A stretch of 64,000 nt of DNA, from the sequence record PV764602.1. The stretch is one strand, 5' to 3'. The notes beneath the pieces were generated by a model that was given only the letters and a program-made list of their open reading frames with translations, was not told the DNA's origin and made no database searches. Made by a program: the position numbers and the translations under genes. Positions 1,985 to 57,720 of the stretch are shown piece after piece. Each line of letters starts with the position of its first letter. The stretch's first letter is position 1.

Positions 1985-2002
1985 AGGGCCCTCCGTGGCC
2001 CT
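1985..2002 (-). terminator. Terminator-like hairpin with ACGGAG hexaloop (CsrA-type site) after csrA
   Basis: Minus strand AGGGCC-ACGGAG-GGCCCT followed by TTCAGTTTTTCTT, 10 nt after the csrA stop. Confidence 0.7.
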
Positions 2003-2011
2003 ATCGGTGTA

Positions 2012-2248
2012 TCAGGTTGCTTCGCTTTCCGCACCCGAAGTGACTTCGGTTGGGCTAGTTGACTTGGCAAACGGCACGCCGCGCTGGATGCGTTCGTGGA
2101 CTTCCTGACGATTGACCGGGGTTTCCTTCGGTGCGTCAATACCGATTTTCACTTGATTGCCCTTGACACCAAGGATACGCACCGTAGACATATTCGAGCC
2201 GGTGCCAATCATGACTGCTTCACCAATGCGGCGAGTAAGAAGCAACAT
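2012..2248 (-). CDS. csrA: Carbon storage regulator CsrA/RsmA homologue
   Basis: [15 protein letters not shown]...[33 protein letters not shown] matches the CsrA consensus, including the Arg equivalent to E. coli R44. Confidence 0.95.
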
Positions 2249-2506
2249 TTTTTGTTTCTCCGTGAAAGTAGTGGGCGACTTTCTTGGTCAGCCCTAGTGA
2301 ATTGAAAAACGAATGAGACGTTCCGTGTTAGACCTAACCACGCATTCGATTGCTGTGTCCCTAGGTGGTGCTGCGCATAGGGCGCAGCTTGTCAGAGCGC
2401 ATATCCAACAAGCTGCGAGCGTCAGAGGGCTCCAATCGGATGCGTGTAGATCGTTAATCCTTACGTGTTTGAGTGGTTGCTTGCGCGTGATTCAATCAAG
2501 GTGCTG

Positions 2507-2866
2507 CTATACCTTATTTACAGTATCCGAGCTACCCATTTGAGCGAAAGCGGAACGCCAACTATCCATGCGTGCCTGCTTTTCTGGATCAAGGGGCAGG
2601 CTGTGATAGAAGGGGTCATGGTCCTTGACCGTCCTCCCTGTGATGGTCAGCATGGTCACGTCGTTCGACCGCACCGCACAAGAGCGCAGGCAACCGGGAC
2701 ATATGTGAACGTACTCCTGCCCGTGAGGCACATACAGCATCATCGGCGGTTCATGCTCAGGATGCTGGCACGGCTTCCACGCTTCCTGCACGGGGCGCAT
2801 GTGGGATTGGATTTTCTCTTCCAGTTCAGAGAAGTCCGTCTTGATGGTAAGCTGTTGCTTGTTCAT
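2507..2866 (-). CDS. Hypothetical protein with Cys/His motif
   Basis: ORF with CQHPEHEPP and HICPGC; start placed at MNKQQ. Confidence 0.55.
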   Translation of the reverse strand: MNKQQLTIKTDFSELEEKIQSHMRPVQEAWKPCQHPEHEPPMMLYVPHGQEYVHICPGCLRSCAVRSNDVTMLTITGRTVKDHDPFYHSLPLDPEKQARMDSWRSAFAQMGSSDTVNKV

Positions 2867-3069
2867 TGCTCGATCATCCCAAGTTCTTGGGCCCGAAGAA
2901 GAGCCACGTGTTTCGTGTTGGCTTCCCACAGGATCGAATCGGTCCGATGCTTGGCCACGTCGGGGTCATGGTTGAACTCGTTCATCAACGCCTGACCATA
3001 GCGCTGATGCTGCGGCTTGGTGCCGAAGAACTTCTTGTCGAAAGCGACCAGTGCGTTTGCGGAAATCAC
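2863..3069 (-). CDS. Hypothetical protein
   Basis: GTG at 3069 with GGAGG SD; 4-nt overlaps with neighbours. Confidence 0.55.
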   Translation of the reverse strand: MISANALVAFDKKFFGTKPQHQRYGQALMNEFNHDPDVAKHRTDSILWEANTKHVALLRAQELGMIEQ

Positions 3070-3428
3070 TTTGCCTCCATAGCATCGGCGAGGGTCAGGG
3101 TTGCGACATAGGGGACCGCAACCGTGGACATTGCGATGAACTCCCAATCACCCATCGGATCAGGCGGTACGAAATGCGCGTCCTTGACCTGAACTCCCTT
3201 GCTTTCCAGATAGCGGAGCACTTCGTTGCGCCAGTCTTCATTTGCCATCCACTCCCACCCACCTAGGTCCGTATTGCGACGGGGCAGGCGATAGAAGCGT
3301 ACCACGCGATCCTGCTGTGCAGCTTCGGCAACCAGCGAGACGAAACGCTCGGCTGCCTCGAAGCCAGTCTCAGTGGGCACAGCACGGCCGATGATGGGAA
3401 GGGAGCGAAGGGTGGCGATCAGTTTCAT
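3066..3428 (-). CDS. Hypothetical protein
   Basis: ATG at 3428 with AAGGAG SD. Confidence 0.6.
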   Translation of the reverse strand: MKLIATLRSLPIIGRAVPTETGFEAAERFVSLVAEAAQQDRVVRFYRLPRRNTDLGGWEWMANEDWRNEVLRYLESKGVQVKDAHFVPPDPMGDWEFIAMSTVAVPYVATLTLADAMEAK

Positions 3429-3633
3429 TCGGTTCTCCTTGATCGGGCGCATGACCCGACAATTCCTGAGTCAGTAGATTGGCCAGCGCGGCCATGTGTT
3501 GTTGAATGATGCTTTGCTGCTCACGTTTCTGCTCGGTGGGAGAAAGAGCGGACAACTCGATCCGCTTCTTCCAGAGCGCCGCGTTACACTCACGTGCAAC
3601 TCGACCAACGTGTTCCCGCGTTTTCTTATTCAC
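3370..3633 (-). CDS. Hypothetical protein
   Basis: ORF track; operon context, overlaps the next gene. Confidence 0.5.
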   Translation of the reverse strand: MNKKTREHVGRVARECNAALWKKRIELSALSPTEQKREQQSIIQQHMAALANLLTQELSGHAPDQGEPNETDRHPSLPSHHRPCCAH

Positions 3634-3884
3634 TTTGCGCGTCTGCGCCTCCGTGCTAGCCGGGCATTCCTATAGTGCTGATAACCCGGAATCAAAACAA
3701 AGGGTATTGCGACAATGAAGCCTCCCGCCAGAAGCAGCAGGAGGGCAACACCTAGGACCGTGATGTGGCCCTCCATGCCAGTGGCGATCCACATTCCTAC
3801 CAACCCAATACCAAGGAAGGCGTACAACGTGACGAGGCTGTTAACCCCGCGTGCTTCATGCAACAACAGGAATCGCAGGAACAT
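3630..3884 (-). CDS. Small two-TM membrane protein
   Basis: Two hydrophobic helices and a basic C-terminal tail. Confidence 0.6.
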   Translation of the reverse strand: MFLRFLLLHEARGVNSLVTLYAFLGIGLVGMWIATGMEGHITVLGVALLLLLAGGFIVAIPFVLIPGYQHYRNARLARRRRRAK

Positions 3885-3893
3885 AACCGCTCC

Positions 3894-4169
3894 TTACATT
3901 TGAATGGTGGCCTCGCCGTAGTGGCGACCACGCACCGGGAAATTACTGACGCCAGTGACGCCAATACTCTTGAGGACAACGCTGATGCGTCCCGCTTCTG
4001 CCGGGGTCAGCTTGGTAGCTGCCAGCAGCTTAGTCATTTCCGGCGACTGGAAATGGTGACTCAGGCCATACTTCGGATCGTCACGCAACGCGATGGCTGC
4101 ACGTTGCAGACTGAGGGCGTTGGCTTTGTGCAGGGGATTGATACCCACCGCGTTGACGGTCTTGCTCAT
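3894..4169 (-). CDS. Hypothetical protein
   Basis: ORF track, start placed at MSKTV. Confidence 0.5.
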   Translation of the reverse strand: MSKTVNAVGINPLHKANALSLQRAAIALRDDPKYGLSHHFQSPEMTKLLAATKLTPAEAGRISVVLKSIGVTGVSNFPVRGRHYGEATIQM

Positions 4170-4186
4170 TCGTCGAACTACTCCGG

Positions 4187-4702
4187 TTAGTTGAGCGCGA
4201 GGTCGCGTTCTTTGGTCTTGTATGCGCACATGATTGCACGCGTGTTCATGTAGTCAGGATCGGACATCTGCTCACCAGTCGTCTGACCGTTCCACATAAT
4301 GTCGAAGATGCAGCCGCAGAAGATGTTCGGCATCGTGCGAGCTTCTACCAGCACTTCCTCATCATCGAAGCCCATGCCTTCCGACGCCTTCAAGTCAGGG
4401 ACGCACTGTGCAATGAAGTGCGCCCGACGTTCGTCTTTCGACGGTGCCACGAACTCGGGCAGCGGCTTGCGCGGCGTACCTTCTTGGATGGATTTCTCAA
4501 TGTCCTCCATGAGGACTTCGGAGGTCGTCTTCTCCGTGACCCCTTGCGGCGGCTTGGACTCGATGGTCGGAGGGGCGGAAGGGATGGCGCTGGCGGACGG
4601 AGGCTGCGGCCCGAAGAAGTACAGGGCAGCCAGCACGATGACAGCGATCAGGAGAGGGTAAACAAGCCAGCCCGGCGGCTGGAACTTGGACTTCTTTTCC
4701 AT
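4187..4702 (-). CDS. Membrane-anchored protein with Pro-rich linker and 4-Cys domain
   Basis: N-terminal TM segment; AQC, FCGC and MC cysteines; AAGGA SD. Confidence 0.65.
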   Translation of the reverse strand: MEKKSKFQPPGWLVYPLLIAVIVLAALYFFGPQPPSASAIPSAPPTIESKPPQGVTEKTTSEVLMEDIEKSIQEGTPRKPLPEFVAPSKDERRAHFIAQCVPDLKASEGMGFDDEEVLVEARTMPNIFCGCIFDIMWNGQTTGEQMSDPDYMNTRAIMCAYKTKERDLALN

Positions 4703-4742
4703 GACAGATTCCTTTTGGTTGGCGACCTATGAAATTAGGTCA

Positions 4743-5228
4743 TTACGTGATTTCGAGGCCAAGGCAAGCGAAGGTCAACTCACCGATGAATTTACCGCCT
4801 GCACACTCCAGTCGGACGAAAGAGCCTAGCGGCACCATCTTGGACCGAGCGTATGCCTTCTGTTCAGCGAGATACAGGACACCAACGACACCGTTCTTGT
4901 AGTCCGAACGGGCGGAGGAAGACAGGTCGGAAATGTAGAACGTGGTGCTGCCGTCCTTGTTATCGGTGACGCGATCCAGCACGCCTGCGATCAACAGCTG
5001 CTGGTTCTCGAATTCGCCGAGGCGGTGGGGTTCATACACCCGAGCTTGGTAGATGCCAAGAGGCAGGGTTTCCTTGAACCCCTTGGCATTCCACTCGGCC
5101 CTGCTGATGATGGTGTTGACCTCGTTGTCATTGGAAGCGGCTTGGCCGTTCCCCGAACACGCCGCGAACAGTGCGGTCAGGGTGGCGATGACGATGGCAC
5201 GGAACGAAGCGCTCAGATACTTGTGCAT
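4743..5228 (-). CDS. Lipoprotein, possibly OB-fold (tRNA_anti-like)
   Basis: Signal peptide with FAAC lipobox; LLIAGVLDRV strand pattern; CAAGGA SD. Confidence 0.5.
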   Translation of the reverse strand: MHKYLSASFRAIVIATLTALFAACSGNGQAASNDNEVNTIISRAEWNAKGFKETLPLGIYQARVYEPHRLGEFENQQLLIAGVLDRVTDNKDGSTTFYISDLSSSARSDYKNGVVGVLYLAEQKAYARSKMVPLGSFVRLECAGGKFIGELTFACLGLEIT

Positions 5229-5251
5229 GGTGAACTTCCTTGACGGTTGAG

Positions 5252-5653
5252 TTAGTGCTTGCAGGAACAGGAGTTGTTGTGCCGGTGCACGTGCCACGCA
5301 CGCATGTTGACGATGTGCGCAATGATGAGTGCTACACCGAACACCACCATTGGGATCGCGTGCAGCCATTCGGACTGGTCAAACCAGTCGTGCCAGATGA
5401 TTGAGGCACTCATGGCAACCGCAGCGAGGAACATCCACTTCCACGAATGCGGATCACGATGACGCCATGTGCCAATCGCTAGCGTGGCGGCAGCGAACGC
5501 AAACGTACCGAGCAGCAGGTAGGTGTGGATGATTTCTTCGCCTTGGACGAATCCAAAGAAGGAAACGCCGAAGAACGCGAGGACAGGAACAGCGGCGCAG
5601 TGCACAGCGCACAGAGCCGATGCAGAGATACCGAGGCGGTCAAGAATTTTCAT
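5252..5653 (-). CDS. MerC-family membrane metal-transport protein with His/Cys tail
   Basis: LDRLGISASALCAVHCAAVP N-terminal signature, four TM segments, C-terminal HVHRHNNSCSCKH. Confidence 0.8.
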   Translation of the reverse strand: MKILDRLGISASALCAVHCAAVPVLAFFGVSFFGFVQGEEIIHTYLLLGTFAFAAATLAIGTWRHRDPHSWKWMFLAAVAMSASIIWHDWFDQSEWLHAIPMVVFGVALIIAHIVNMRAWHVHRHNNSCSCKH

Positions 5654-5654
5654 G

Positions 5655-6050
5655 TTAGGCCCTCAGAGCGAAGTTGTCGTCGTGAGCGCAGTCACCGATT
5701 TCTTCCTCGTAGAAGCGAAGGCCCTTGGCAGTCAGCTTGTAGTACACGTCGGTACCACGGCGAGTCTCGATCAGCACCGAACGGAACAGGCCCTGACGAA
5801 GTGCCCACGCCATCGTGTCGGTGTTGATCGCGTCGCCAACATTGAGGATACGTGTGGGCCGACCATCTTCCAGCATGCCGATGCGGTAGCTGTAGATCGG
5901 ACGTTCAATGGGCCAGCCGCCCTTGGTGTGACCAATCACCTCGTTGCGTTCCAGCTGCGGGAACAGGATGCGTTGCGCAGTGTTGACCATGATGGAAGAC
6001 AGCACAGCGGTGATGGCGGCGGTGGATTCTGCGGCAGTGCGACGATTCAT
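5655..6050 (-). CDS. Hypothetical protein
   Basis: ORF with AAGGA SD. Confidence 0.55.
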   Translation of the reverse strand: MNRRTAAESTAAITAVLSSIMVNTAQRILFPQLERNEVIGHTKGGWPIERPIYSYRIGMLEDGRPTRILNVGDAINTDTMAWALRQGLFRSVLIETRRGTDVYYKLTAKGLRFYEEEIGDCAHDDNFALRA

Positions 6051-6092
6051 TTCCAGCTTCCTTGGTTGAAGATATTGAGATACAGGCGCTAC

Positions 6093-6425
6093 TCACTCGG
6101 AGTAGATGGTAGGGCGTTTGGTTTGCTTGCTCTTGAGTTCGCCAGTGAGGGAGCGAAGACGCTCCCACGTGATCGGTCCAGCCATGCCCTTCGCTTTCTT
6201 GAAAGCAGTACGCACGAATCGGTCTTCGCAGTCGAGGCGTTGAGCCATATCGGCGTAGCTGACGTTCTCGCCCTCGATCAAGTAACGATCAATCTTGACC
6301 GGGCGCTTCTTGGCAAAGTCACGCTGCGTTGCAATGTGGAAGCCTTGCATCGTAGGTGCTTTGTCGGGTTTGCTAAGGGGATCGTATGATCCCCGTTTGA
6401 TGAGGTGACTCACAGCTTTTTCCAT
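6093..6425 (-). CDS. Hypothetical basic protein, possible HTH
   Basis: VSYADMAQRLDCEDRFVRTAF is HTH-like. Confidence 0.45.
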   Translation of the reverse strand: MEKAVSHLIKRGSYDPLSKPDKAPTMQGFHIATQRDFAKKRPVKIDRYLIEGENVSYADMAQRLDCEDRFVRTAFKKAKGMAGPITWERLRSLTGELKSKQTKRPTIYSE

Positions 6426-7198
6426 TCCTCGTAGGTCATGACTTGCGTGACGTAGCCCGGCCACGTCTTTTCAGTGGCGACGTTGAGGGCAGTTTCGTGC
6501 AAGTCGAACAACCACGGCTCAACATCGCCGAAGTCCTTACCGAAGTGTTCGATCTGGCCATAGGTGCCCGCGTATCGACCCGGCTCCCCATTCTCCAGTG
6601 CGACACGACGGATGATGCACCAGCGCGTAGGTTCGATGAAGGGTATACCCTCAGCTTCGGCCATGCCCTTCGCTTCTTCGACCGCTTCCTTAGCGGTGGC
6701 GTAACTGCCGAACCCGGTGTTGAACGGTTCATGCAGTCCCTCTTCATTTACAATGATGATGACGGCGAAGAAGCCCCGAATGCCGTGCGTCACAGTTGCA
6801 TATGCAGTGATGGGCGGTTCGTAGTCCGGGTAGTGCTCCTTCAACGCCTCAGCAATCGTGGCTTCGGTGTCGAACGTGTTGCTCAGTTCCTTCGGCAGTT
6901 CGTAGAACGTGGAGTAATCATGGTCATCCATGAAGCCCCCGAACTCGCGCGCATGGTCATCGTTGAGGATGATGAAGCGACCGACCAGTTCGTACTTGAG
7001 CTTGAGGACAGTGTGCACACCATTCTCAGCGTATTGCGATCGGACAGTGCTTGCACCCTTTCGCTCACGATCGGCTTGTTCTTCCGCAGCCTTGGCCGTG
7101 CGGTACAGGCCCGAGCAGTAGTCCTCGTAGTTGCAGCAGGTGCAGCCGGTGCCGTGGTGGATGGTGTAGCAGAAACCGACGGGTGCATGCTTGCTCAT
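6410..7198 (-). CDS. Hypothetical protein
   Basis: 262-aa ORF with GCTCC motif. Confidence 0.6.
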   Translation of the reverse strand: MSKHAPVGFCYTIHHGTGCTCCNYEDYCSGLYRTAKAAEEQADRERKGASTVRSQYAENGVHTVLKLKYELVGRFIILNDDHAREFGGFMDDHDYSTFYELPKELSNTFDTEATIAEALKEHYPDYEPPITAYATVTHGIRGFFAVIIIVNEEGLHEPFNTGFGSYATAKEAVEEAKGMAEAEGIPFIEPTRWCIIRRVALENGEPGRYAGTYGQIEHFGKDFGDVEPWLFDLHETALNVATEKTWPGYVTQVMTYEEWKKL

Positions 7199-7506
7199 GT
7201 TTCATCCTCAGTGCTGTAGGTGCGCCATGCGCTTTCGCGGGCGGGTGCGTAACGCAGATGCTTGACGGCGTAACGGTTTCCGTAGTGATCCGTCTTCCAC
7301 TCATCGGTGAACCCGATTTCACGAACCGCTGCTTGGTAGGTGTCCGGATCGTCCTCGTAGTAACCGTTGGTGTTGTCGATGCTGTGCCAGTGGGCAAACT
7401 TGCCACCGCACACGTTGCACTTGTTGGGATAGCTCGCGTTGTGCGTGTCCCAAATCATGTGGTGCCCGTTTTCGCACAGGCGTTCTTCACTTCCTCGATA
7501 GCCCAC
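7195..7506 (-). CDS. Hypothetical Zn-ribbon-like protein
   Basis: CENGH and CNVCG motifs. Confidence 0.55.
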   Translation of the reverse strand: MGYRGSEERLCENGHHMIWDTHNASYPNKCNVCGGKFAHWHSIDNTNGYYEDDPDTYQAAVREIGFTDEWKTDHYGNRYAVKHLRYAPARESAWRTYSTEDET

Positions 7507-7507
7507 G

Positions 7508-8077
7508 TCACTTCCTCTTGGCGTAGTAGCGATGCCCCTTGTGGGGGAATGCGTTGTGGCCGAACGGATGGATGGTGTCCAACTCGTAGCCGGAACTATG
7601 GCGATAGATGCGCGTCGTTTCGTGTGTCGAAGTGGTTTTCGTTACGCGGTCCACATACACACGTTGATCGTCCATCAATGCCTCGCGCACGATCTGGCGC
7701 ACTTGACGCAACGTGCGAACCTTGCGGTCGATGAGGATTTCACCGAAGACTTCATACACGCGACGGCGCTTGTACTTCGGACGGTTTCGGCTGAACGATA
7801 CTGCTTCCTTGAACGCTGCTTTCAACAGCGCGACCGAATCGCCGTGATGCTCCTGCGGCGACCAAAACTCAATGAAGCACCACCCGCCCTTCTCATCATA
7901 GCTTTGCAGGAAGGCGTGCGACTTTCGGTGCGCCTTGTAGTGAGGGCTCTCAATCCAGTTGTCCGTGACACTGGAACGAAGGGCAACCATTTGCTCCGGC
8001 GTGCCGTTCTCAACGACGACGCCCCAATTCTTGTCAGCGAACGGCTTGCAGTAGGTGAAGGTCGGGCGACGGCTCAT
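7508..8077 (-). CDS. Hypothetical protein
   Basis: ORF track, start placed at MSRRPT. Confidence 0.55.
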   Translation of the reverse strand: MSRRPTFTYCKPFADKNWGVVVENGTPEQMVALRSSVTDNWIESPHYKAHRKSHAFLQSYDEKGGWCFIEFWSPQEHHGDSVALLKAAFKEAVSFSRNRPKYKRRRVYEVFGEILIDRKVRTLRQVRQIVREALMDDQRVYVDRVTKTTSTHETTRIYRHSSGYELDTIHPFGHNAFPHKGHRYYAKRK

Positions 8078-8298
8078 CCTGTGAAACTCCTTTTCATCAA
8101 ATCGCGTGGGTTCGGATACTGCTGTTTCAACTTGTGCGTTCGCATAGCATCCCGATCCTGCCGGATGAGTTGCTTCGCTTTGTCTTTCACCGTCAGCTGC
8201 CAATCGCCCGCCGCACGCAACCCACCTTTCACGCTCAGGGATCGCAGCAGGGATTGTGTGGCGTTGGTGTTGGTGATTGCAACGATGGGGAGGATCAT
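8074..8298 (-). CDS. Hypothetical protein
   Basis: Start MILPIV with GAGGGA SD. Confidence 0.45.
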   Translation of the reverse strand: MILPIVAITNTNATQSLLRSLSVKGGLRAAGDWQLTVKDKAKQLIRQDRDAMRTHKLKQQYPNPRDLMKRSFTG

Positions 8299-8678
8299 TT
8301 TGTATCCCTCGGATAGTGGTAACCGAAGAACCACACCGGGTAGCCATTGGACTGGTTGGTGTAGTGAGTGATCTTGGTCAGTACGAGTTCGGGCTGATCG
8401 AAATACAACCGCAGGAACTCTTCGATTTGGGCCGGAGTGCGCTGCGGGCTATAGAAATACTGACCCGAGTTGCCCCACACTTTCTTAGCGCAACGGTCGA
8501 ACTTGCTGCTATCCCACGAGAACATGCGGTCACTATATGCGCCGCTGTTGAGGTGGGTTTCCAAAACGTCCACGTGATTCTGGAATTGAACACGGCCACC
8601 GAATTCATCGGTAAGCTCTTGGAACTGACCATCCACGAAGACGAAGGTGCGGTGGCCGAACTGATTATCCAGCGACAT
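8295..8678 (-). CDS. Hypothetical phage protein
   Basis: 127-aa ORF; 4-nt overlap with next gene. Confidence 0.6.
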   Translation of the reverse strand: MSLDNQFGHRTFVFVDGQFQELTDEFGGRVQFQNHVDVLETHLNSGAYSDRMFSWDSSKFDRCAKKVWGNSGQYFYSPQRTPAQIEEFLRLYFDQPELVLTKITHYTNQSNGYPVWFFGYHYPRDTK

Positions 8679-8964
8679 AGTGCTTCCCCTTTAGGGCCTT
8701 GAATACGTATTCGTTGATGTGAACGAACTGGAAACAAGCAGCGACGCACGCAGCAACGAGGAAACACAGGGCTAACACAAGCTTGCCCTTGCCAGCCAAC
8801 GCCACACACCAGCACGCATAGGTCAACACGGTTACGATATTGAGATTTATCTCCACCCTATCTCGTTGGTAGCACCAGCCAAAGTAAAGCAGAACGTCCC
8901 ACATGTTGTAGAAGATGTACGCCCGGTCACCGTGGATATACATGCGATCACTCCATCGCATCAA
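8665..8964 (-). CDS. Small membrane protein
   Basis: Hydrophobic C-terminal half. Confidence 0.5.
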   Translation of the reverse strand: MMRWSDRMYIHGDRAYIFYNMWDVLLYFGWCYQRDRVEINLNIVTVLTYACWCVALAGKGKLVLALCFLVAACVAACFQFVHINEYVFKALKGKHYVAG

Positions 8965-9677: not shown

Positions 9678-9719
9678 TGCGTTACCCCTTGTGGTGAATA
9701 GTCAGGCGATGCCCGTGCG

Positions 9720-10064: not shown

Positions 10065-10080
10065 GATCCTTTCCTTGAAA

Positions 10081-10106: not shown

Positions 10107-10112
10107 GGTGAA

Positions 10113-17051: not shown

Positions 17052-17109
17052 GTTTCTCTGTCCTAGAAAAGCGCCTGCCGTGGGCGGCGCTGCTGCCTGA
17101 TATTTACAG

Positions 17110-17588
17110 GATTTCTAACTGTAGAAATCAGGCCCAGTTATGGCCTTCCTAAAACCTGGGATTTTTGTGTCAGGATACCTACATGCTCATTTGAATCTCG
17201 GTAGGGTGAGACGCGTAGCGTCGAATCCCTAGGTAGGCGCAGCCTACCACCTAAAGGTGCACTTCTCGGTAAGCCAGCGATCCTTTAGGATCGCTGGCGT
17301 TTCGCGGTCGTCGCTTACGCGCCTCCCTTGAATATCCCTAGGGAGAGAAATTTCCCCCTAGAGTTGTTAGAAATACTACTCTTACTTTATAGGAGTACGA
17401 TTTCTAACAAAATTCCTGAAAAGTTGCATCTGTGTAGCCGGGAACCGACTCTACAGGGCCTCCCGTTCAATCCTGTGTAAAACACCTCACTTTGCAATTC
17501 CTTTAGGAGTTCGATTTCTAACAACCACCCTGCTGCGGCTGTAGAAATCCCTTCCGATTTCTAACACCCTTTAGGAGTTCGATTTCTA
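17110..17588. repeat. Iteron-like (G)ATTTCTA(AC) repeats and palindromes; candidate replication origin
   Basis: Eight copies in both orientations (17110, 17122r, ~17368r, 17399, 17513, 17542r, 17556, 17581). CTTTAGGAGTTCGATTTCTA is exact at 17501 and 17569; 12-bp-arm palindrome at 17273-17298. Confidence 0.65.
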
Positions 17589-17995
17589 CATGCGATCCCC
17601 CTAGACACGCCAGCGTTACAGTAAAATCGCCCTTATTTCGCAGTTCTGGGCTTAATCTTCGGTCTATTACCGTCCCAGCCTCTTGGGAGGGCCTAAACTG
17701 GCAAAATAAGGGTCCGAACTGCCTCATTTGCGGAAATACGTTTCCGGCAGTTCTGCCCTTACGGAACCACCCCGCACGGGTCAGGATCGACCCAGGAGGG
17801 TCAGAATGGGTCCAGAAGGCCAAAATCGCCTAGGATCGAGCATATCTACGCTGGATGCACGTTGTTTTCTCGCAATTTGAGTGTACGAGGGCGATAGAAC
17901 CCCTCAGCCTACCATCACCTGCTCTGGCGTTGTCCGGGTTGGGGTGGAAATTGTGTCATAACAACTTACGGACAACTTCAACTGAGGAACACGTT

Positions 17996-21966: not shown

Positions 21967-22011
21967 AAATCTGCACTGGTGTGCGCGCCCGACGTCGCCA
22001 CTGGCAAATCC

Positions 22012-22043
22012 TCGGGCTACCTCGAAAGGGGTGGCCCTTTTTC
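22012..22043 (+). terminator. Intrinsic terminator after the tRNA
   Basis: GGGCTACCTC-GAAA-GGGGTGGCCC-TTTTT. Confidence 0.8.
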
Positions 22044-22068
22044 ATTTCTGCACTCCGAGGACAACGCT

Positions 22069-22524
22069 ATGCTGGAGACGGCGAGTGACAAGAAAAAGAA
22101 GGAAGAGCAAAAACTGCATAAGGACGTGACGGAAATCATTAAGCACGAACGCCTTGGTGCTCAGAAGGGCCGAGAGGTTGAATTGCTTCAAGCGCATCAA
22201 AATAGATTGAGACACGCAGGGCGCTCCATGCAGGCCGAGAGTCTGAGCCCCCACATTCGCATCAATTCAGTTGAATCCCAAGATCATAGAGAAGCAGCAC
22301 AGAAGCTCACTCATCGACTCAAGGAAAAGGTGGCCTTCCTCAAAGAAAGTGGCCGCGCCGACAAGGGCAAGGAGTTGCACACGCAGCTTGCCGAACAATA
22401 CAAACACTTGCACTATTGGGCCAACGCAGGCCACACCCGCAACAAAAGTCCGACCCTGCTGCGAGCACGCGACGATTTCTACAATCGTCACATGGAGCAT
22501 CAGCGGCTTGCGCTGAAACAATAA
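22069..22524 (+). CDS. Basic His/Lys/Arg-rich protein, probable internal head protein
   Basis: ATG with GAGGA SD; MLETAS N-terminus; His-rich helices. Confidence 0.6.
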   Translation: MLETASDKKKKEEQKLHKDVTEIIKHERLGAQKGREVELLQAHQNRLRHAGRSMQAESLSPHIRINSVESQDHREAAQKLTHRLKEKVAFLKESGRADKGKELHTQLAEQYKHLHYWANAGHTRNKSPTLLRARDDFYNRHMEHQRLALKQ

Positions 22525-49520: not shown

Positions 49521-49538
49521 GGGCACAGGGACGTGCTC
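49521..49538 (+). promoter_or_regulatory. CsrA/RsmA-type binding hairpin
   Basis: GGGCAC-AGGGAC-GTGCTC; ACAGGGACGT matches (A/U)CANGGANG(U/A). Confidence 0.6.
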
Positions 49539-49556
49539 CCTTTTTAGGTAGAGGCT

Positions 49557-50948: not shown

Positions 50949-51367
50949 TGATTGGTTCTGACCAACTCTCAGAAGTAGGTGTACCTGTCGGAGAGCTCTC
51001 CATTGGGAGGACTCTCGACGTATATGCGGTGGACGATCTACACTCGGTCATCCGCCTGAAAGGAACCGTCTCAAATCGGGTCCTGCGCAGTGCAGAAGTA
51101 GTAACCATCACAACTGCCTCCGGCGCTTCCGTTGTGGTGGCTGCCCAAAGTCGCCTCCCTGTCTATAGCGGACAGACAGCGCTGGCTAAGAATGTTGGTG
51201 CCAACATGATTGCTGTGATGGCCCCTAATGGCGCTTTTCGGTGGGAGCGGGTTGCCACCATCGAGGCTGGTACTGAGGCCGTAGTGGACCTCAAGTGTGA
51301 AGGCTACATAGTAGCCGGTAACGATCCTAAAACCGGGCTAATCTTGGTGTCTGGATCGCTGCCGTGA
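50948..51367 (+). CDS. Stand-alone catalytically dead Hint-like protein
   Basis: TGATG-coupled; aligns by eye to the upstream Hint (VVTITTASGASVVV, WERVATIE); C1 and HN are absent. Confidence 0.55.
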   Translation: MIGSDQLSEVGVPVGELSIGRTLDVYAVDDLHSVIRLKGTVSNRVLRSAEVVTITTASGASVVVAAQSRLPVYSGQTALAKNVGANMIAVMAPNGAFRWERVATIEAGTEAVVDLKCEGYIVAGNDPKTGLILVSGSLP

Positions 51368-51382
51368 CAGTCAATTTTACGT

Positions 51383-51440
51383 AAGGACATAAGGCTACGG
51401 ATAGCAGCCTCACATAAAGACACTTCCCAACAAATAAGGA
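51383..51440 (+). promoter_or_regulatory. Leader with three ANGGA motifs, one in an ACGGAT hexaloop
   Basis: AAGGA at 51383, GCT-ACGGAT-AGC at 51394-51405, AAGGA SD at ~51435. Confidence 0.5.
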
Positions 51441-51446
51441 ACGATC

Positions 51447-52124
51447 ATGCAACTCCAGGTTCTTCTCTCCTCTGTCGAAGCTCTCAAGTACGTTGCCGGC
51501 CTGCGGCTGCCTGCTGTCAAGGCGTTCAAGGTCAGTTCATACCTGCAACGTGCTCAGGTCCATATTGACGCATGGCAGGCAACTGGCCGGACTCTGGCCC
51601 AGCGCCACTACGGCGAAGACCAGCAGCCGCTGTCTCCCGAAGACGCCGTACAGTTCAAGGCAGCCACTGACGAAGTGCTTGCTTCGGACGTCGAAGTCGA
51701 TACTGTCAAGCTCCTGAGCTACCCGGCAGACTTCAAGGAGGAAAGTTTCATCCCCCTGAACATGGCCATCCTGTCTGAGCACTTTGTTGACGTTACCAAG
51801 CCCGAAGCTACTGGTGTCACTAAGATTAGTCGGGGTAAGCTGATTGGTGCCTACATGTCCCTGCAACAGCTGGGTCAGCAGGAACTGCCGAAGGCCGTTG
51901 GCGAAAATTTGCTGTTCAACCTGATGACGGTCCGAGACCTACTGAATTCGTTCTCGGAACGCGACGGTGAACTGACTAAGCAGGGCGATGCGAAGGCTCT
52001 GGAGGAATATCGTTCCGAGGAAGTGGAGGTCAACTTCTATCCCATCAACATCAATGCGTTTGGTGATGTTGAAGTGGCTCCGGCACTTCTCGTAGATGCC
52101 GCGTGGCTCATCACTGAGGAATGA
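51447..52124 (+). CDS. Tandem two-domain helical protein (DUF1617-like, possible fibre chaperone)
   Basis: Two related halves, each ending in an EV(E/D)V...(P/A)xx(M/L) pattern. Confidence 0.5.
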   Translation: MQLQVLLSSVEALKYVAGLRLPAVKAFKVSSYLQRAQVHIDAWQATGRTLAQRHYGEDQQPLSPEDAVQFKAATDEVLASDVEVDTVKLLSYPADFKEESFIPLNMAILSEHFVDVTKPEATGVTKISRGKLIGAYMSLQQLGQQELPKAVGENLLFNLMTVRDLLNSFSERDGELTKQGDAKALEEYRSEEVEVNFYPININAFGDVEVAPALLVDAAWLITEE

Positions 52125-52127
52125 TTC

Positions 52128-52673
52128 ATGGCTGAGTTTGACATTGCCTATAGGCAGCAGAACATCGAGTCGGATTTGATTGATGATCCTACTGACCCTG
52201 GGGCTGTGACAAACTATGGTTGGAACCTTGGCTCCCTCCGCTTGGTGGGAGTCGAGGCCGACTACGAATTCGTCAAGAGTATGACGGCGGCAACTGCCAA
52301 GGAATTGTATCGTCAGTATTTCTGGCATCCACTTTGGACCGAACTCAAATGTCAGCAGGCGGCAAACAAGCTGTTTACCCTCGCTGTGACAACGTGTGCA
52401 CCCAACAACTTCAACTTGGCTACTCGCTGTTTGCAGAGGGCCTTGTGGGCATCGGGCGCTTACGTGCATGAGGATGGAAAGCTTACAGAGGATGTAATAA
52501 GCGCGGCTAACGCCGTTGAGTGTTCGGCCCTAAGCTCTGCCATGCGTAGTGAAATGGCCTCCTACTACAGGACGCTTAACGCGGAGTATGAACTGAGGGT
52601 CAAGTACAAGCTGCCCGTGGTAGTCCCCGTGAATCGTTACATTCGCGTGTGGCTTCACAACTCCTATCGTTGA
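52128..52673 (+). CDS. GH108-family lysozyme-like protein (divergent)
   Basis: DDPTDPGAVTNYG, AKELYRQYFW, LQRAL and DG motifs; the canonical EGGY reads ESDL. Confidence 0.7.
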   Translation: MAEFDIAYRQQNIESDLIDDPTDPGAVTNYGWNLGSLRLVGVEADYEFVKSMTAATAKELYRQYFWHPLWTELKCQQAANKLFTLAVTTCAPNNFNLATRCLQRALWASGAYVHEDGKLTEDVISAANAVECSALSSAMRSEMASYYRTLNAEYELRVKYKLPVVVPVNRYIRVWLHNSYR

Positions 52674-52683
52674 AGAGGATGGC

Positions 52684-53409
52684 ATGACCATGAGCACGGA
52701 AACCGTTCTGATCGGTCTTGGCTGTCTACCTGATAACGCTCAAGCCCTTGAGGGGGCGTGCATTCGGTACGGCATCGAGACTACGTGGCACAAGTCCATT
52801 TTCATCGGACAGATCGCTGTAGAAACAGGTGGCTTCCGTGCCACCCGCGAAAGCATGAATTACAGCGTTGAAGGTCTTATCAATGGTTTTGGCCGTCACC
52901 GTATCAGTGTGGCGGACGCTCAGAAATACGGGCGTATTGATAAGGTCGTGAACGGCAAGAAAACTGTTATCCGAGCAGCTAACCAAGTAGCCATCGCCAA
53001 CATCCTGTACGGCGGTGAGTGGGGACGCAAGAATTTGGGTAATACCGAGTTGAACGACGGATGGAATTTCAGGGGCGGCGGTGACAAGCAATTGACTGGC
53101 CGCGCTAATTGGACCAACTACAGCATGGACACCTATGGTGACTTGCGTGTGCTGGAGAATCCTACTCTGATCGAACTCTATCCCGACAAGAGCTACACTG
53201 CTGGTTGGTTCTGGCAACGCAACAAGCTGGGTGACATTGCTTCGCAATATGTGCTCCCTGATGATCCCAAATCTCCGGAGTACGATTCCATCCTGCGTTC
53301 TACTGTTACGGTAGTTACCAAGAAGGTCAACGGCGGTGACAAGGGTTTGGAGGATCGCATCATGTGGACGAAAAAGGCCCTGCAAGGCTTCAATCAACTC
53401 GTACTGTGA
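52684..53409 (+). CDS. GH19-family endolysin
   Basis: FIGQIAVETGGF, ESMNYS, DGWNFRGGGDKQLTGRANW and VTKKVNGG..GLEDR. Confidence 0.88.
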   Translation: MTMSTETVLIGLGCLPDNAQALEGACIRYGIETTWHKSIFIGQIAVETGGFRATRESMNYSVEGLINGFGRHRISVADAQKYGRIDKVVNGKKTVIRAANQVAIANILYGGEWGRKNLGNTELNDGWNFRGGGDKQLTGRANWTNYSMDTYGDLRVLENPTLIELYPDKSYTAGWFWQRNKLGDIASQYVLPDDPKSPEYDSILRSTVTVVTKKVNGGDKGLEDRIMWTKKALQGFNQLVL

Positions 53410-53461
53410 CTAACGTGCTGGGAACATTAGTTCCCAGCATTCTTCGTATAGGCCCCTGACT

Positions 53462-53827
53462 ATGAGAATTTTAGCCAATAGCACCAAGGTACGCGAAGGG
53501 GATTTCTCCAAGCTTCGTATCCCAAAAGCAAAGCAAGTCAAGGTGCACACGCATGACGCATGGCAGGGCCGAAAGAATCATCACCTGTCCTACGATTTTA
53601 CTGCACCTAGCACTAGCATGCACCATCAAGCAGTCGGGAAGGCCATCCATGAGCATCTTGCGTCTCATGGCCTGTCTCCACACAAACGCTCCAGTTCGGG
53701 CAACACGGTTACCATTGAGTACAGGCACCCATCGGGTCACCGCGCCGTTGTCAAGATGAAGCGTACAAAGCTCGCAGGCGATCCCAACCATCACGTGGAA
53801 TTCGCCGTAGAGAAGACCGGTAACTAA
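53462..53827 (+). CDS. Basic His-rich protein, probable internal head protein
   Basis: MRILANS N-terminus; His/Lys-rich. Confidence 0.55.
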   Translation: MRILANSTKVREGDFSKLRIPKAKQVKVHTHDAWQGRKNHHLSYDFTAPSTSMHHQAVGKAIHEHLASHGLSPHKRSSSGNTVTIEYRHPSGHRAVVKMKRTKLAGDPNHHVEFAVEKTGN

Positions 53828-53847
53828 CACTTCAATGAGGTAACGTC

Positions 53848-54189
53848 ATGCCCTTGTGGTTGACTGCATGGTTTGCGAAAATGTGGGCCAAGTGCTCGCA
53901 GTATGTCATTGCCGCTGGCTCCATATTGGCGGCAATTGCTGGTATCTTCCTGTACGGTCGCTTCAAGGGTAAGTCCGCCGCCGATGCAAAGCATGCGGAG
54001 CAGGATGCGAAACGAATTGAGGCTGAAACCAAGATCGTTGAGAAGATCGACCAAGCTCACGAATCTACCCGTGAGCAGGTCGAGGAAAAAATCGAGAAAA
54101 TCCCTGCTCCAACTACGGATCCTAACGAGACAGTTAGGGTGGGGGATGCACCTAAAGATTCGGCCGCAGGCAAATTGAGGGGCTGGTAA
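53848..54189 (+). CDS. Inner-membrane spanin (Rz-like)
   Basis: N-terminal TM segment plus coiled coil; near the lysins and followed by a lipoprotein. Confidence 0.7.
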   Translation: MPLWLTAWFAKMWAKCSQYVIAAGSILAAIAGIFLYGRFKGKSAADAKHAEQDAKRIEAETKIVEKIDQAHESTREQVEEKIEKIPAPTTDPNETVRVGDAPKDSAAGKLRGW

Positions 54190-54416
54190 TGAAAACTCTC
54201 CTGATTATCGCCATCGCCTTACTTGCAGGCTGCGCAACTACTCCACAAGTGGTGGCTCAAACCGACATTTGCGCTGGCTGGAAGGCCATCAAGGTCAACG
54301 AAAACGACGAATTCACGGATGGAACTGCCAAGCAGATTCTAGCGCACAATTGTCAAGGCGCAGCCTTGAAGTGCTGGGCCTATCCGAGGAATGATCCCCA
54401 AATTTGTGAACGCTAA
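54189..54416 (+). CDS. Outer-membrane spanin lipoprotein (Rz1-like)
   Basis: LLAGC lipobox; Cys-containing mature part; TAATG coupling. Confidence 0.75.
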   Translation: MKTLLIIAIALLAGCATTPQVVAQTDICAGWKAIKVNENDEFTDGTAKQILAHNCQGAALKCWAYPRNDPQICER

Positions 54417-54425
54417 GAGGTAACA

Positions 54426-56810
54426 ATGCCGCTGCCCACTTCCATCCAACCCATCATTGAGAATACTCCGGACATTCTCAAAGCATGTGTTGAAGTCTAT
54501 CAGTCCATGTCTCTGCTACAGGACCGGGGCTTCATGTTCTTGAACGAGCAGATTGAATTGCTCACGTCTACGGGTCAGGTGGCACACGTCACCACTGCGT
54601 ATGGTACTCAGGTTGAGTTGCCCACGTATCATACTCTGGCAGCCACCTCGAACGCCTCTACGGAATTGGTGCAGCAGTTTCAGCGCCAAATCTACGACGT
54701 GTTCACTAGCAACAACCCGACGGTAATCATTAGTGACGGTCTTGGTAACGACACTCAGGTGATCGGCTATCAGACCATGAACGACAAGGTTAACGCTACG
54801 TCGGACGTGGCTTCTATCGCCAACACCAACGCGCTCAACGCGCTGGGTAAGGCCACCGAAGCGCTGAACCGTGTTACCAACTCCGAGCTCAACGCCAACG
54901 TGGCTTTGGCGAACGGCACACCACCCACCTATCAGACGCGTTCGGTTCTCGATACTGTTACGACGATGCAACGCAATAGTATCGCCTACGTGATCGCTGA
55001 TCCGGTTCCCACCAACAACACCATCTACCAGTACAACGGTACTGCATGGACTCCTCAGTATGATCGGCTGCTGACCGCCCTAGGTAGTCCGCGTGGCTAT
55101 CTGGCCCCACTCACGGGCGCTATCTACCGTACCTATCAGAGCAAGCTAGAATCACTGGTTACTCCTGAAGACGTGGGGGCCAAGGGTGACGGCACTACTG
55201 ATGACGGTCCCGCCTTCATCGCCGCCGCTGCGAACGGGCGCCTGATTGTGCTGTCCCCCAACAAGACCTACCGTATCACCTCCAACGCCACTGTAGGCAG
55301 CATCATGCCTAATGGCTCCAAGATTTCCATCGGTCCGGGCGCTACCCTGACTTTTGATGGCCTGATCGTGGACGATGCTACGGTTGTGTTTACGGGTGAG
55401 GGCAACGCCGTCAGCAGCACTAGCGTCTACAGCGTTGGCTGGTTCGCAGGTGATAGCTTTAACGCCAAGTGGCTCGCCATGAAGCGTGGTTTCACCCAGC
55501 AGGTAGTCAAGTACGTCACGCTGCCGATGCCGCACCGCACCGATCCTGCGGCAACTACCGCAGCTTCGGACGGTCAGGCACGTTGGAAGCTTACGGACTC
55601 TGTGGTCTTCAACAATACGGAATCTAACCTGATCGTCAATGCGCTGGGCGAATTCCTTGTGGACCAGTCCGCCTCGCTGTCGGCAGGTGCTTTCATCCTT
55701 GGCGAGCTGACTGCCCCCTCCAGCATCAACTTCCCGAACGGCTTGCGCGTCCTGTGTAACGGTAGTGCAACTTATGGTCTGCGCGTTCGCGGCGGTAGCA
55801 GCATCAGTTTTGAAGAACTACTGGTTCTGGACAGTGCAACCAACTCCGGCATCCTGTGGGACAACTATAACGGCCCGAGTCATCGCATTAGCTTCGACCG
55901 CGTGCGTATCGACGGCTTTGGTGTGGCAGGCGTAACTATCCAGCCGCAGGGTGGCCCGAGCTATCCGAACCAATCGCCTCCGATCACTTCGTGTTCGATC
56001 AATTCGCTGCAAACGCGAGGCGGTCGTAGCGGCTGCACGAACTTCGTCAAGATCGCGGGTAACGTGGATGGCCTGACCATCACCAACGTCCTTGAAGATC
56101 GTCCGTCGGGTAGCCTGCTGTTCGACTGGAGCGATTCCATGTTCTCGCTGACTAACACTCAGTACGGCACGATTGGTCGCTCCGGTTTGGAGATTGGTCA
56201 CATTCAGGCGACCAGCACCCAGCTGCCCATCATCCGTGCGTTCGACAGCACTTCCGCTGCTGACCCTGCGAATGGCAAGATCACGTTCTCGGTAGAGCAC
56301 ATCTATCAGGCGTATCAGCAGAACATCGTTCCGGTCATCATGGAATACTCGAAGAACTGCACCATCGGACGTATCAACGCAGGACGCCCCACCTCTAGTC
56401 AGGAAGTGCTTGTCCGTATCTTCCGCGACTGCGAGGGTATTTCTCTGACCGGTACACACTACACCGCTGTTCGTAGTCAGGCCCTGCGTACTCAGTTTGA
56501 CGGACGCTTCGGCATGGTGGACGTGGTGCAGCAGAACTCTGCGATCTTCACGGATCTAAACACTGCGGCACTGACGTTCAAGTTTGACCTAATCTGCCTC
56601 ACCTCCGCGTCTACTTACGCTTCGGGTTGGGCAGGCGCCAACGCTCTCGATATTCCCACGTCGCTGACCAAGAATATCAACGTTGCCCAGGGTCCGCTGG
56701 AAGGAACGACCGGCCCTGAAAGCACCCTCAGCATCAGTGCTGCGGAAAACAAGTTCTTTGTGGAAAACCGAACCGGACAGAATCAGCTCGTTGCGGTTCT
56801 CATGTCCTAA
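54426..56810 (+). CDS. Tailspike/polysaccharide depolymerase (beta-helix)
   Basis: TPEDVGAKGDGTTDDGPAF pectate-lyase-like helix start; N-terminal anchor domain. Confidence 0.75.
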   Translation: MPLPTSIQPIIENTPDILKACVEVYQSMSLLQDRGFMFLNEQIELLTSTGQVAHVTTAYGTQVELPTYHTLAATSNASTELVQQFQRQIYDVFTSNNPTVIISDGLGNDTQVIGYQTMNDKVNATSDVASIANTNALNALGKATEALNRVTNSELNANVALANGTPPTYQTRSVLDTVTTMQRNSIAYVIADPVPTNNTIYQYNGTAWTPQYDRLLTALGSPRGYLAPLTGAIYRTYQSKLESLVTPEDVGAKGDGTTDDGPAFIAAAANGRLIVLSPNKTYRITSNATVGSIMPNGSKISIGPGATLTFDGLIVDDATVVFTGEGNAVSSTSVYSVGWFAGDSFNAKWLAMKRGFTQQVVKYVTLPMPHRTDPAATTAASDGQARWKLTDSVVFNNTESNLIVNALGEFLVDQSASLSAGAFILGELTAPSSINFPNGLRVLCNGSATYGLRVRGGSSISFEELLVLDSATNSGILWDNYNGPSHRISFDRVRIDGFGVAGVTIQPQGGPSYPNQSPPITSCSINSLQTRGGRSGCTNFVKIAGNVDGLTITNVLEDRPSGSLLFDWSDSMFSLTNTQYGTIGRSGLEIGHIQATSTQLPIIRAFDSTSAADPANGKITFSVEHIYQAYQQNIVPVIMEYSKNCTIGRINAGRPTSSQEVLVRIFRDCEGISLTGTHYTAVRSQALRTQFDGRFGMVDVVQQNSAIFTDLNTAALTFKFDLICLTSASTYASGWAGANALDIPTSLTKNINVAQGPLEGTTGPESTLSISAAENKFFVENRTGQNQLVAVLMS

Positions 56811-56816
56811 CGTGGT

Positions 56817-56834
56817 GGTCACATGGACGTGACC
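56817..56834 (+). promoter_or_regulatory. CsrA/RsmA-type binding hairpin or terminator
   Basis: GGTCAC-ATGGAC-GTGACC-CTTTCTT; ACATGGACGT matches the full consensus. Confidence 0.6.
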
Positions 56835-56851
56835 CTTTCTTGAGGTGCACA

Positions 56852-56995
56852 ATGAAGCTATTGGTATTGATCGGAGTGCTAGCTCTGGCAGGCTGCAACT
56901 CGATGCCTACGCCGTCCAAGCCGCTGAACACTGGGGACGAAACGCAACCTCCTCCGGGTTGTGTGGAACTACGTAAGCAAGGAGGCAAGTGCTAA
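56852..56995 (+). CDS. Small lipoprotein (47 aa), below the ORF-track size cutoff
   Basis: MKLLVLIGVLALAGCNSMPTPSKPLNTGDETQPPPGCVELRKQGGKC; GAGGTG SD. Confidence 0.7.
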   Translation: MKLLVLIGVLALAGCNSMPTPSKPLNTGDETQPPPGCVELRKQGGKC

Positions 56996-57417
56996 TGGCC
57001 CTGTCGGTACAAGATTACACGGCACTGCGACGCATCCACTCCAAGGCAATGTCTGCCTTCAAGTATGTGTCGGACAAAACCAAATGGGGACTGGTAGAGT
57101 ATTGGGAACCCGAGGACGTACTGTTCCCCGTAGGTGCTAGGTTTACGGGAGATTGCGAAGAATTCGCTAGAGTGTGCATGCAGGAAAGCATCAAGGCCGG
57201 TTACAAAGCACGGCTCGTTGCATGCCTTACTGAAGGTGGCGAAGGCCACTGCATCTGTGAGGTGGCGGATGAGGAAGAAACGGGATCGTTCTTCTTAGAC
57301 AACCGCAAGACCAACATCGTTACCAAACTGGGATTGACTGGCTACAAGTTCTACAGCGTGTCGCCTTGGAATCCCCAATTTAGCGAGACTCGGCCGTGGA
57401 GGCTGGTCAAGGAGTAA
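56995..57417 (+). CDS. Transglutaminase-like cysteine proteinase (BTLCP/C93)
   Basis: KYVSD..WGLVEYW, GDCEEF, GHCI and LDNR give the Cys-His-Asp triad. Confidence 0.85.
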   Translation: MALSVQDYTALRRIHSKAMSAFKYVSDKTKWGLVEYWEPEDVLFPVGARFTGDCEEFARVCMQESIKAGYKARLVACLTEGGEGHCICEVADEEETGSFFLDNRKTNIVTKLGLTGYKFYSVSPWNPQFSETRPWRLVKE

Positions 57418-57420
57418 GGT

Positions 57421-57639
57421 ATGTCGCTGGTTCCAACCAACACACCACGGCAAAAGATCGCTGCCAAATACAATCCTAGAATCACTAGGATTCGGAAGCA
57501 GAAAGCGCAACTGCGCAAGTCCTTGAAGAACGCCAATACGGCACAGCGCAAGGTCATCGGTAACAAGATTCTGGCCATGAGTAATCAGATCGCTTTGCTT
57601 ACGGTACAGCGCAACCGCGAGTTGCAGCGCCTCCGATAA
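57421..57639 (+). CDS. Small highly basic protein
   Basis: 72 aa, Arg/Lys-rich coiled segment. Confidence 0.6.
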   Translation: MSLVPTNTPRQKIAAKYNPRITRIRKQKAQLRKSLKNANTAQRKVIGNKILAMSNQIALLTVQRNRELQRLR

Positions 57640-57650
57640 GCCAAAAGAAA

Positions 57651-57677
57651 AGGGCCACCCCTTTCGGAGCGGCCCTT
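57651..57677 (-). terminator. Intrinsic terminator for the minus-strand block
   Basis: Minus strand GGGCCGCTCC-GAAA-GGGTGGCCC-TTTTCTTTT. Confidence 0.75.
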
Positions 57678-57720
57678 ATGTTGTTGGGTTGGACTGCAAG
57701 GATGCTAGTGTCCAGGAGTT

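Follow-up and report, generated by a model that had tools for sequence, protein, structure and literature searches.

Short hairpins with an ANGGAN hexaloop, placed directly behind stop codons in the operons of Xanthomonas phage PhiXhv-15, belong to an element that recurs among phages, is tied to a particular loop, strand, and position, and is no peculiarity of this phage. They came to notice in a stretch of 64,000 nucleotides (here called the window), which megablast places at bases 124001 to 188000 of the PhiXhv-15 record PV764602.1. PhiXhv-15 is a virulent jumbo myovirus of 228.7 kb that infects X. hortorum pv. vitians (PMC13340338). A preliminary description of the window had reported a csrA gene together with five such hairpins and had read them as a CsrA regulon internal to the phage. 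Part of that observation is confirmed, and three extra copies elsewhere in the genome and the recurrence of the hairpin in the uncultured phages of IMG/VR strengthen it beyond its first form. The hairpin is probably a real control element. As to what reads it, we tentatively propose, with a confidence that stops a little short of even, that the hairpins are putative sites between cistrons at which a CsrA-family protein would bind, be it that of the host or that of the phage, and that some of them double as weak terminators. That a CsrA/RsmA protein would be the reader, which of the two it would be, and in which direction it would act we infer from the form and placement of the sites.

A strand- and position-specific class of hairpins

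The remaining genome was taken as four separate pieces, each of which was analyzed separately. Intergenic sequence was defined from the GenBank gene table (93 gaps, 9.4 kb in total), and dinucleotide shuffles (n = 300) served as the null model. Counted on the sense strand and with a stem of at least 4 bp, intergenic ANGGAN hairpins number six in the whole genome versus 0.55 in shuffles, none of which reaches six, and three in the window versus 0.22, a count reached by 1 of the 300 shuffles; the antisense count for the genome is one. The enrichment over shuffled sequence that had been named beforehand as a check on the proposal is borne out for this strong class. Four of the 22 intergenic hexaloop hairpins carry an ANGGAN loop (binomial 3.6e-6), and in a look-elsewhere check any 4-of-6 loop pattern reached four in 18 of 2,000 random loop sets. 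No enrichment of the motif is seen outside intergenic DNA: the two strands of the genome together hold 25 copies, a density of 5.5 per 100 kb of strand against 6.0 in a relative that lacks csrA.

The six strong copies have G+C stems of 4 to 6 bp, a C-G closing pair, and the hexaloop A-N-G-G-A-(C/T/G). All six begin 6 to 9 nt past a stop codon. In four of them, 17 to 40 nt lie between the end of the hairpin and the next annotated start, and a fifth, the csrA hairpin, ends 11 nt before an annotated TTG and 23 nt before an ATG that is the likelier start. An extra GGA lies shortly past the stop codon at three of the six sites, the downstream Shine-Dalgarno sequence contains GGA at two (GGAGGA after the csrA hairpin, and that after the hairpin behind the gene for the small subunit of ribonucleotide reductase [RNR]), and the 3' sequence is T-rich at three (1985, 49521, and 56817), two of the six meeting a simple terminator scan. 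The strong hairpins are a non-random class, specific for both strand and position.

All five hairpins of the preliminary description are present as it gave them, but only those at 1985, 49521, and 56817 are solid (Table 1). These three have G+C-rich 6-bp stems, and each is present in the minimum-free-energy fold of its surroundings. The csrA hairpin folds on its own at -10.9 kcal/mol and is followed by a T-run that begins 4 nt past the stem. The hairpin at 49521-49538 lies 18 nt ahead of the ATG of a 463-aa gene and has a T-run on its 3' side; that at 56817-56834 lies 17 nt ahead of the ATG of a 47-aa open reading frame (ORF), which precedes the BTLCP gene, and it is these two that meet the terminator scan. 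The 794-aa protein encoded upstream of the latter hairpin has tail-spike matches in PHROG, and the product of the BTLCP gene, 140 aa long, is a transglutaminase-like cysteine protease (Pfam PF06035 at 36.5 bits). The remaining two hairpins of the five, at 51394-51405 and 57696-57705, are at chance level. With stems of at least 3 bp, shuffles of the window's intergenic sequence average 0.65 ANGGAN hits, so that the former counts for little, and with stems of at least 2 bp about two such hairpins are expected. The finer points of the original account hold: a C-G-closed CANGGANG core occurs in four of the five, the hairpins at 49521 and 56817 match the longer consensus fully, and none is itself a Shine-Dalgarno sequence. 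The other intergenic hairpins mostly have loops of the TTCG or GAAA type, likewise as described; the clear terminators of PhiXhv-15 combine such tetraloops with stems of 8 to 13 bp and a T-run behind.

As a side observation, the 47-aa ORF has a lipoprotein-like N terminus and is directly followed by the 140-aa PF06035 protease (window 56852-57417), both in the late operon 3' of the tail-spike-like gene.

Table 1. Hairpins and csrA-associated features of PhiXhv-15 (window coordinates unless marked as record coordinates)
Feature	Coordinates	Strand	Context
Hairpin, loop ACGGAG, C-G closed, 6-bp stem	1985-2002	-	9 nt after csrA stop
Hairpin, loop AGGGAC, C-G closed, 6-bp stem with one G-U pair	49521-49538	+	7 nt after stop of 761-aa gene
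Hairpin, loop ATGGAC, C-G closed, 6-bp stem	56817-56834	+	6 nt after stop of 794-aa tail-spike-like gene
Doubtful hairpin, 3-bp stem, T-A closed	51394-51405	+	Alternative fold 51392-51410: 5-bp stem, 9-nt loop starting ACGGAT
Weak hairpin, 2-bp stem	57696-57705	+	Not a hexaloop on a stem of the kind sought
Hairpin copy	Record 67446		Follows RNR small subunit; no T-run
Hairpin copy	Record 195781		Follows head-fiber-like protein (265 aa); no T-run
Hairpin copy	Record 206668		Follows 708-aa fiber protein with Peptidase_S74 chaperone domain; no T-run
csrA	2012-2248	-	78 aa; GenBank "translational regulator CsrA"; Pfam PF02599; PHROG 9500
ACGGAG hexamer	2258-2263	-	Within csrA's own ribosome-binding region; identical to loop of csrA 3' hairpin
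GGAGGA, Shine-Dalgarno of 94-aa gene, read from sequence	1966-1971	-	14 nt 3' of csrA hairpin

Conserved columns of the hairpin

We aligned the 14-nt cores of ten copies, six from PhiXhv-15 and four from uncultured phages. Six columns are invariant in all ten (C4, A5, G7, G8, A9, and G11), which amounts to the closing C-G pair and the A, G, G, and A of the loop. Within the loop, all four bases occur at position 2 (N) and three at position 6 (X); the three outer stem pairs vary on both sides between copies with pairing kept. Since the copies had been collected by a hairpin search, the stem pairing is partly circular, and the informative part lies in the columns that never vary. The published high-affinity site for CsrA/RsmE is an ANGGAX hexaloop set directly on a C-G-closed stem, with N and X looped out (PMC4005645). 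As aligned here, the invariant columns of the hairpin coincide with the positions that CsrA/RsmE reads. A search of the PhiXhv-15 genome against Rfam, with record bases 50001-100000 excluded, gave tRNA-Asn as the sole match at the gathering score, and four element-rich loci of uncultured phages gave no match.

Recurrence in uncultured phages

IMG/VR was scanned for exact core hairpins alongside a permuted-loop control of the same composition, with about 120 matches listed per pattern. Among the 122 matches listed for GGCCAAGGACGGCC, at least 13 lie 0 to 15 nt after a sense stop codon and at least 1 in the equivalent antisense position; for GGCCACGGACGGCC, with 126 matches listed, the numbers are at least 23 and at least 2. 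The permuted-loop control GGCCAGAGACGGCC gave one sense and one antisense case among the 120 matches listed. The core that recurs in the post-stop position is GGCC-A(A/C)GGAC-GGCC. A scan blind to the loop, for GGCC, six free bases, and GGCC with the common 3' flank, returned eight post-stop sites, seven with A(A/C)GGAC loops (ACGGAC four times and AAGGAC three times) and one with ACTACC, and 4 of its 86 in-ORF sites had an ANGGAN loop. Pooling all scans gives at least 40 post-stop sites on at least 34 contigs, in 32 distinct flank contexts. The contigs, which are unrelated, range in G+C content from 0.40 to 0.66 and carry differing capsid and terminase families. Some of them hold two to five copies.

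The uncultured copies have a nearly invariant GGCC stem and C/A-rich flanks with neither T-run nor U-tract, and for this reason they are no intrinsic terminators. About 10 nt past the hairpin lies a Shine-Dalgarno sequence, which includes GGA in the majority of copies inspected by eye, and the start codon falls 18 to 22 nt past the hairpin in most of those with a Shine-Dalgarno-anchored start. In the cultured-phage collection, blastn searches with an element-rich locus and with an 81-nt cassette gave chance-level hits only. Bacterial genomes yielded ten hits to a 20-nt pattern, nine within ORFs of high-GC genomes and one, the only convincing copy, behind a stop codon in a Gammaproteobacteria metagenome-assembled genome. 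We found no description of the recurrent hairpin in the collection of papers searched, and Rfam holds no such family.

A pair of IMG/VR loci, L396 and L488, has a common downstream flank at a post-stop GGCC-N6-GGCC hairpin, one of them with the loop ACGGAC and the second with ACTACC, a natural variant without GGA.

The phage CsrA

The csrA gene reported in the preliminary description is confirmed by the GenBank annotation and by Pfam. Its product scores 66.9 bits against PF02599 (cut-off, 27), with residues 1-55 covering profile positions 1-52 of 53, and matches PHROG 9500, "CsrA-like regulator," at 2.3e-21; by sequence it belongs to the CsrA/RsmA family PF02599. Residues 1-56 align with the solved chains 1y00, 2bti, and 7yr6. 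In this alignment the phage protein retains the N-terminal Leu/Arg strand, the GVKGNQV segment, and an Arg aligned with E. coli Arg44, residues chosen as RNA contacts on the basis of established knowledge of CsrA. It also has a 3-residue insertion after the first strand and a 22-residue C-terminal tail of its own. In a search of 5.8 billion proteins, the only close match was the identical protein of its own clade, all others reaching at most 69% identity over the core. Judged by its sequence, the phage CsrA is a divergent orphan and was not recently copied from a host gene. CsrA encoded by phages has been described before (PMC8450108, PMC11879866).

One copy of the hairpin lies directly 3' of csrA. 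The ACGGAG hexamer in the ribosome-binding region of csrA, together with the GGAGGA Shine-Dalgarno sequence after the csrA hairpin, which is a possible second GGA site, hints at autoregulation, but GGA is frequent in Shine-Dalgarno sequences anyway. The 94-aa gene 3' of csrA has its annotated start at a TTG at 1973, and an in-frame ATG lies at 1961-1959 with the GGAGGA sequence 4 nt upstream; this ATG is likely the true start.

Possible function as intercistronic CsrA sites

A CsrA-type site is the best match for the hairpins, and to this extent the interpretation in the preliminary description is partly supported. The layout is the same as that of the ColE7 operon, and it is on this account that we read the hairpins as CsrA-family sites between cistrons. 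Both the RsmA of the host and the CsrA of the phage would recognize such a hairpin. A dimer bound there would sit at the edge of the ribosome-binding region of the next cistron and would lower initiation. Ribosomes that terminate on the upstream gene would melt the structure and thereby couple expression of the downstream gene to translation of the upstream one: with the hairpin starting 6 to 9 nt past the stop codon, the known footprint of the ribosome implies that the terminating ribosome would unwind it. In the copies with a T-run (1985, 49521, and 56817), the hairpin would probably serve as a weak terminator or attenuator as well, as in the ColE7 operon. The roles of "timer" and "stoichiometry control" suggested in the preliminary description are conjecture.

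A wider reading, which we regard as doubtful, would extend this to the uncultured phages. The pattern GGCC-A(N)GGA(C/T)-GGCC with its stem variants, located 5 to 13 nt past a stop codon and some 20 nt ahead of the following start, might be a widespread, undescribed intercistronic cassette of tailed phages that recruits a CsrA-family protein onto polycistronic mRNAs and sets gene ratios through the regulator of the host or of the phage. If so, PhiXhv-15 would be the first cultured phage to combine such sites with a reader of its own. CsrA homologues of phages are known but their targets are not, and consensus sites in the operons of a cultured phage offer concrete places to look. A loop-specific hairpin in many unrelated uncultured phages suggests a general phage device for tuning neighboring cistrons, and if its reader is not CsrA, it is still a conserved phage RNA motif in need of an explanation.

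Counterevidence and alternative explanations

Several findings weigh against assigning the hairpins to CsrA. The same pipeline, counting ANGGAN-type post-stop hairpins, was run on all genomes compared here. It returned seven for PhiXhv-15 (six real and one at a spurious ORF), which carries csrA, and none for three other csrA-carrying phages, namely, Vibrio phages 431E45.1 and VvAW1 and Providencia phage PSTCR8lys. Two samples without csrA likewise gave none: Burkholderia phage BCSR5, of which a 50-kb stretch was taken, and PhiXhv-5, which infects the same host species and hence meets the same RsmA. Nor were such hairpins found in the 6-kb neighborhoods of five csrA genes from IMG/VR, and tblastn found no csrA on pieces of the hairpin-bearing IMG/VR contigs, which are partial, so that the full genomes may differ. 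Phage csrA as a predictor of the hairpins is not supported, given the three csrA phages and five csrA neighborhoods without them, and the distribution does not favor a tie between the hairpins and the phage's own CsrA over one with host RsmA or another reader. To these points can be added that the three of six copies with T-rich 3' sequence also fit a plain terminator, that the Shine-Dalgarno sequences after 49521 and 56817, the two main late-gene sites, lack GGA, and that the whole class in PhiXhv-15 comprises six sites of about three sequence types only.

Comparison of relatives, which the preliminary description had put forward as a test of loop conservation and stem covariation, gives the CsrA assignment no help either. 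Four phages (PhiXhv-12, PhiXhv-16, Ep026, and Ep032) are 98 to 99% identical to the window by blast. Eight sites were compared with PhiXhv-15 in three of them, PhiXhv-12, PhiXhv-16, and Ep026. The sites are identical, the csrA hairpin and the hairpin proper at 49521-49538 included; the sole difference is the loss of one C in PhiXhv-12 and PhiXhv-16 from the C-run 3' of the latter hairpin (window 49539-49541). Invariant sites in relatives that are themselves nearly identical make conservation uninformative on loop selection. No relatives at intermediate distance were found in INPHARED or IMG/VR, the next after this clade having a major capsid protein only about 36 to 49% identical, and for the 761-aa protein IMG/VR contains no relative.

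Within this clade, Erwinia phage Ep032 (host, Erwinia sp. YA1) and Xanthomonas phage Ep026 showed equal identity and score against the window in two blast searches. Their records are OQ603353 and OQ603359, that of Ep026 being flagged UNVERIFIED. One of the two may bear a wrong host label; alternatively, the range of hosts may be exceptionally broad.

Among other explanations for the hairpins, the plainest is that they are ordinary intrinsic terminators, attenuators, or 3'-end stabilizers in operons, with a GGA loop that CsrA does not read. We consider this unlikely, although it accommodates the position of all six hairpins right after stop codons, the terminator-like sequence at 49521 and 56817, the T-run after 1985, and the placement of hairpins behind long fiber and spike genes (those for the 794-aa tail-spike-like, 708-aa Peptidase_S74, and 265-aa head-fiber proteins), where attenuation is common. 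What it leaves unexplained is the loop: a terminator needs no fixed loop, yet here the loop is the conserved part. The clear terminators of this phage, moreover, have 8- to 13-bp stems with tetraloops instead of 4- to 6-bp stems with hexaloops, and three of the six copies lack a T-run, as do the uncultured copies with their C/A-rich tails. A sequence-specific RNA element with a reader other than CsrA would account for the fixed loop. Such a reader could be an RNA-binding protein or endonuclease of phage or host, or the small ribosomal subunit, for which the purine-rich loop would be a standby or reinitiation site. The distribution agrees with this explanation, since the hairpin is common in partial phage pieces without a sign of csrA and absent from other csrA-carrying phages; the fixed short distance after the stop codon and before the ribosome-binding site would suit termination-reinitiation, and the near-invariant GGCC stem of the uncultured family hints that the stem, too, is recognized. 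However, no candidate protein common to these phages emerged, Rfam returned no match, and the occurrence of all four bases at N weakens the case for continuous pairing with rRNA, whereas it is what would be expected for CsrA, with N looped out. On balance, a reader of this other kind appears to us quite improbable.

Coincidence, by which a few GC-rich hairpins would carry GGA in the loop by chance, has in its favor that the sample is small, that the motif was picked after the sequence had been seen, and that two of the five original sites are at chance level. The shuffle, strand, and look-elsewhere tests are contrary to it, three further copies turned up outside the window in which the motif was first noticed, and the loop-specific recurrence in IMG/VR withstood the permuted-loop control. 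Chance is therefore nearly excluded, and we regard this explanation as close to refuted.

Two further candidates were rejected. A sponge RNA found no backing in the A(N)GGA density of long gaps, which has no outlier (maximum, 3.6 per 100 nt), or in Rfam, which gave no such match in the parts of the genome searched. A Cas-related RNA nuclease as the reader was discarded as well: the phage "CRISPR/Cas associated protein" is a PD-(D/E)XK nuclease and no hairpin-cutting enzyme.

Other features of the genome

The 9-mer CTGTAAATA occurs 18 times in the genome, with 14 copies in annotated gaps, and these are always on the locally transcribed strand. Examples are at record 34645, 41852, 56380, and 67463 (all +) and at window 17101(-) and 60310(-). 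In the early region it often lies 3' of a TGCCA-N3-TGGCA palindrome, and it probably represents a phage promoter together with an operator. One copy begins 4 nt past the hairpin at record 67446, so that this hairpin may belong to the upstream RNR transcript alone.

Separating the helicase block from the structural block, window 17052-17854 is a divergent noncoding region of 803 nt with three copies of a 20-nt repeat (17390, 17504, and 17572), four of GATTTCTAA, and many small hairpins. It gave no Rfam match and may serve as an origin or a control region. The GenBank record also holds two nested or overlapping pairs of coding sequences on the same strand (window 7508-8347 with 8074-8298 and 21979-22524 with 22069-22524), probably annotation artifacts.

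Comparison with known systems

The PhiXhv-15 hairpins resemble Rho-independent terminators in having a G+C stem behind a stop codon and, at three sites, a T-rich tail. They differ in their short stems, in their fixed hexaloop, and in the lack of a T-run in half of the copies and in the whole uncultured family. Closer in form are the stem-loops of RsmZ and the 20-nt ribosome-binding-site RNA (PMC4005645), which likewise set an A-N-G-G-A-X hexaloop, variable at N and X, directly on top of a C-G-closed stem. In RsmZ, however, the penultimate pair is commonly U-A, whereas in hairpins of the PhiXhv type it is mostly C-G, with A-U in two copies. The sites of RsmZ are, moreover, clustered in a sponge RNA, whereas those of PhiXhv-15 are single and scattered in mRNAs. 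The sponge small RNAs CsrB, RsmY, and RsmZ as a group have GGA in hairpin loops as PhiXhv-15 does, but no clustered array was found in PhiXhv-15. The consensus obtained for CsrA by SELEX is RUACARGGAUGU (quoted in PMC2896534).

Homologues of CsrA occur on phages and plasmids as well as on integrative and conjugative elements (PMC8450108, PMC7366521), gp28 of phage PTXU04 being one (PMC11879866). With these (PHROG 9500) PhiXhv-15 has in common a small CsrA-family gene, here in a virulent phage, and a presumed action on RNA during infection; its protein differs from the other mobile homologues in being a divergent orphan that has an insertion and a tail of its own. Reports on the mobile homologues concern action on host regulons such as CRISPR-Cas, whereas in PhiXhv-15 consensus sites lie in the phage's own operons, a situation for which we found no report.

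The nearest parallel is the colicin E7 (ColE7) operon, where E. coli CsrA attaches to the GGA in the loop of the T1 terminator between the cistrons and to the Shine-Dalgarno sequence of cel, and lowers translation of the lysis gene (PMC2896534). The cei-cel T1 hairpin, like those of PhiXhv-15, belongs to a mobile element, carries GGA in the loop of an intercistronic hairpin, is a partial terminator, and has a ribosome-binding site close behind. It is a single plasmid site with binding shown by gel shift, whereas PhiXhv-15 has six dispersed, putative ones. In ColE7, T1 is paired with the Shine-Dalgarno sequence of cel, whereas in PhiXhv-15 the downstream Shine-Dalgarno sequence offers a GGA at two of the six sites only.

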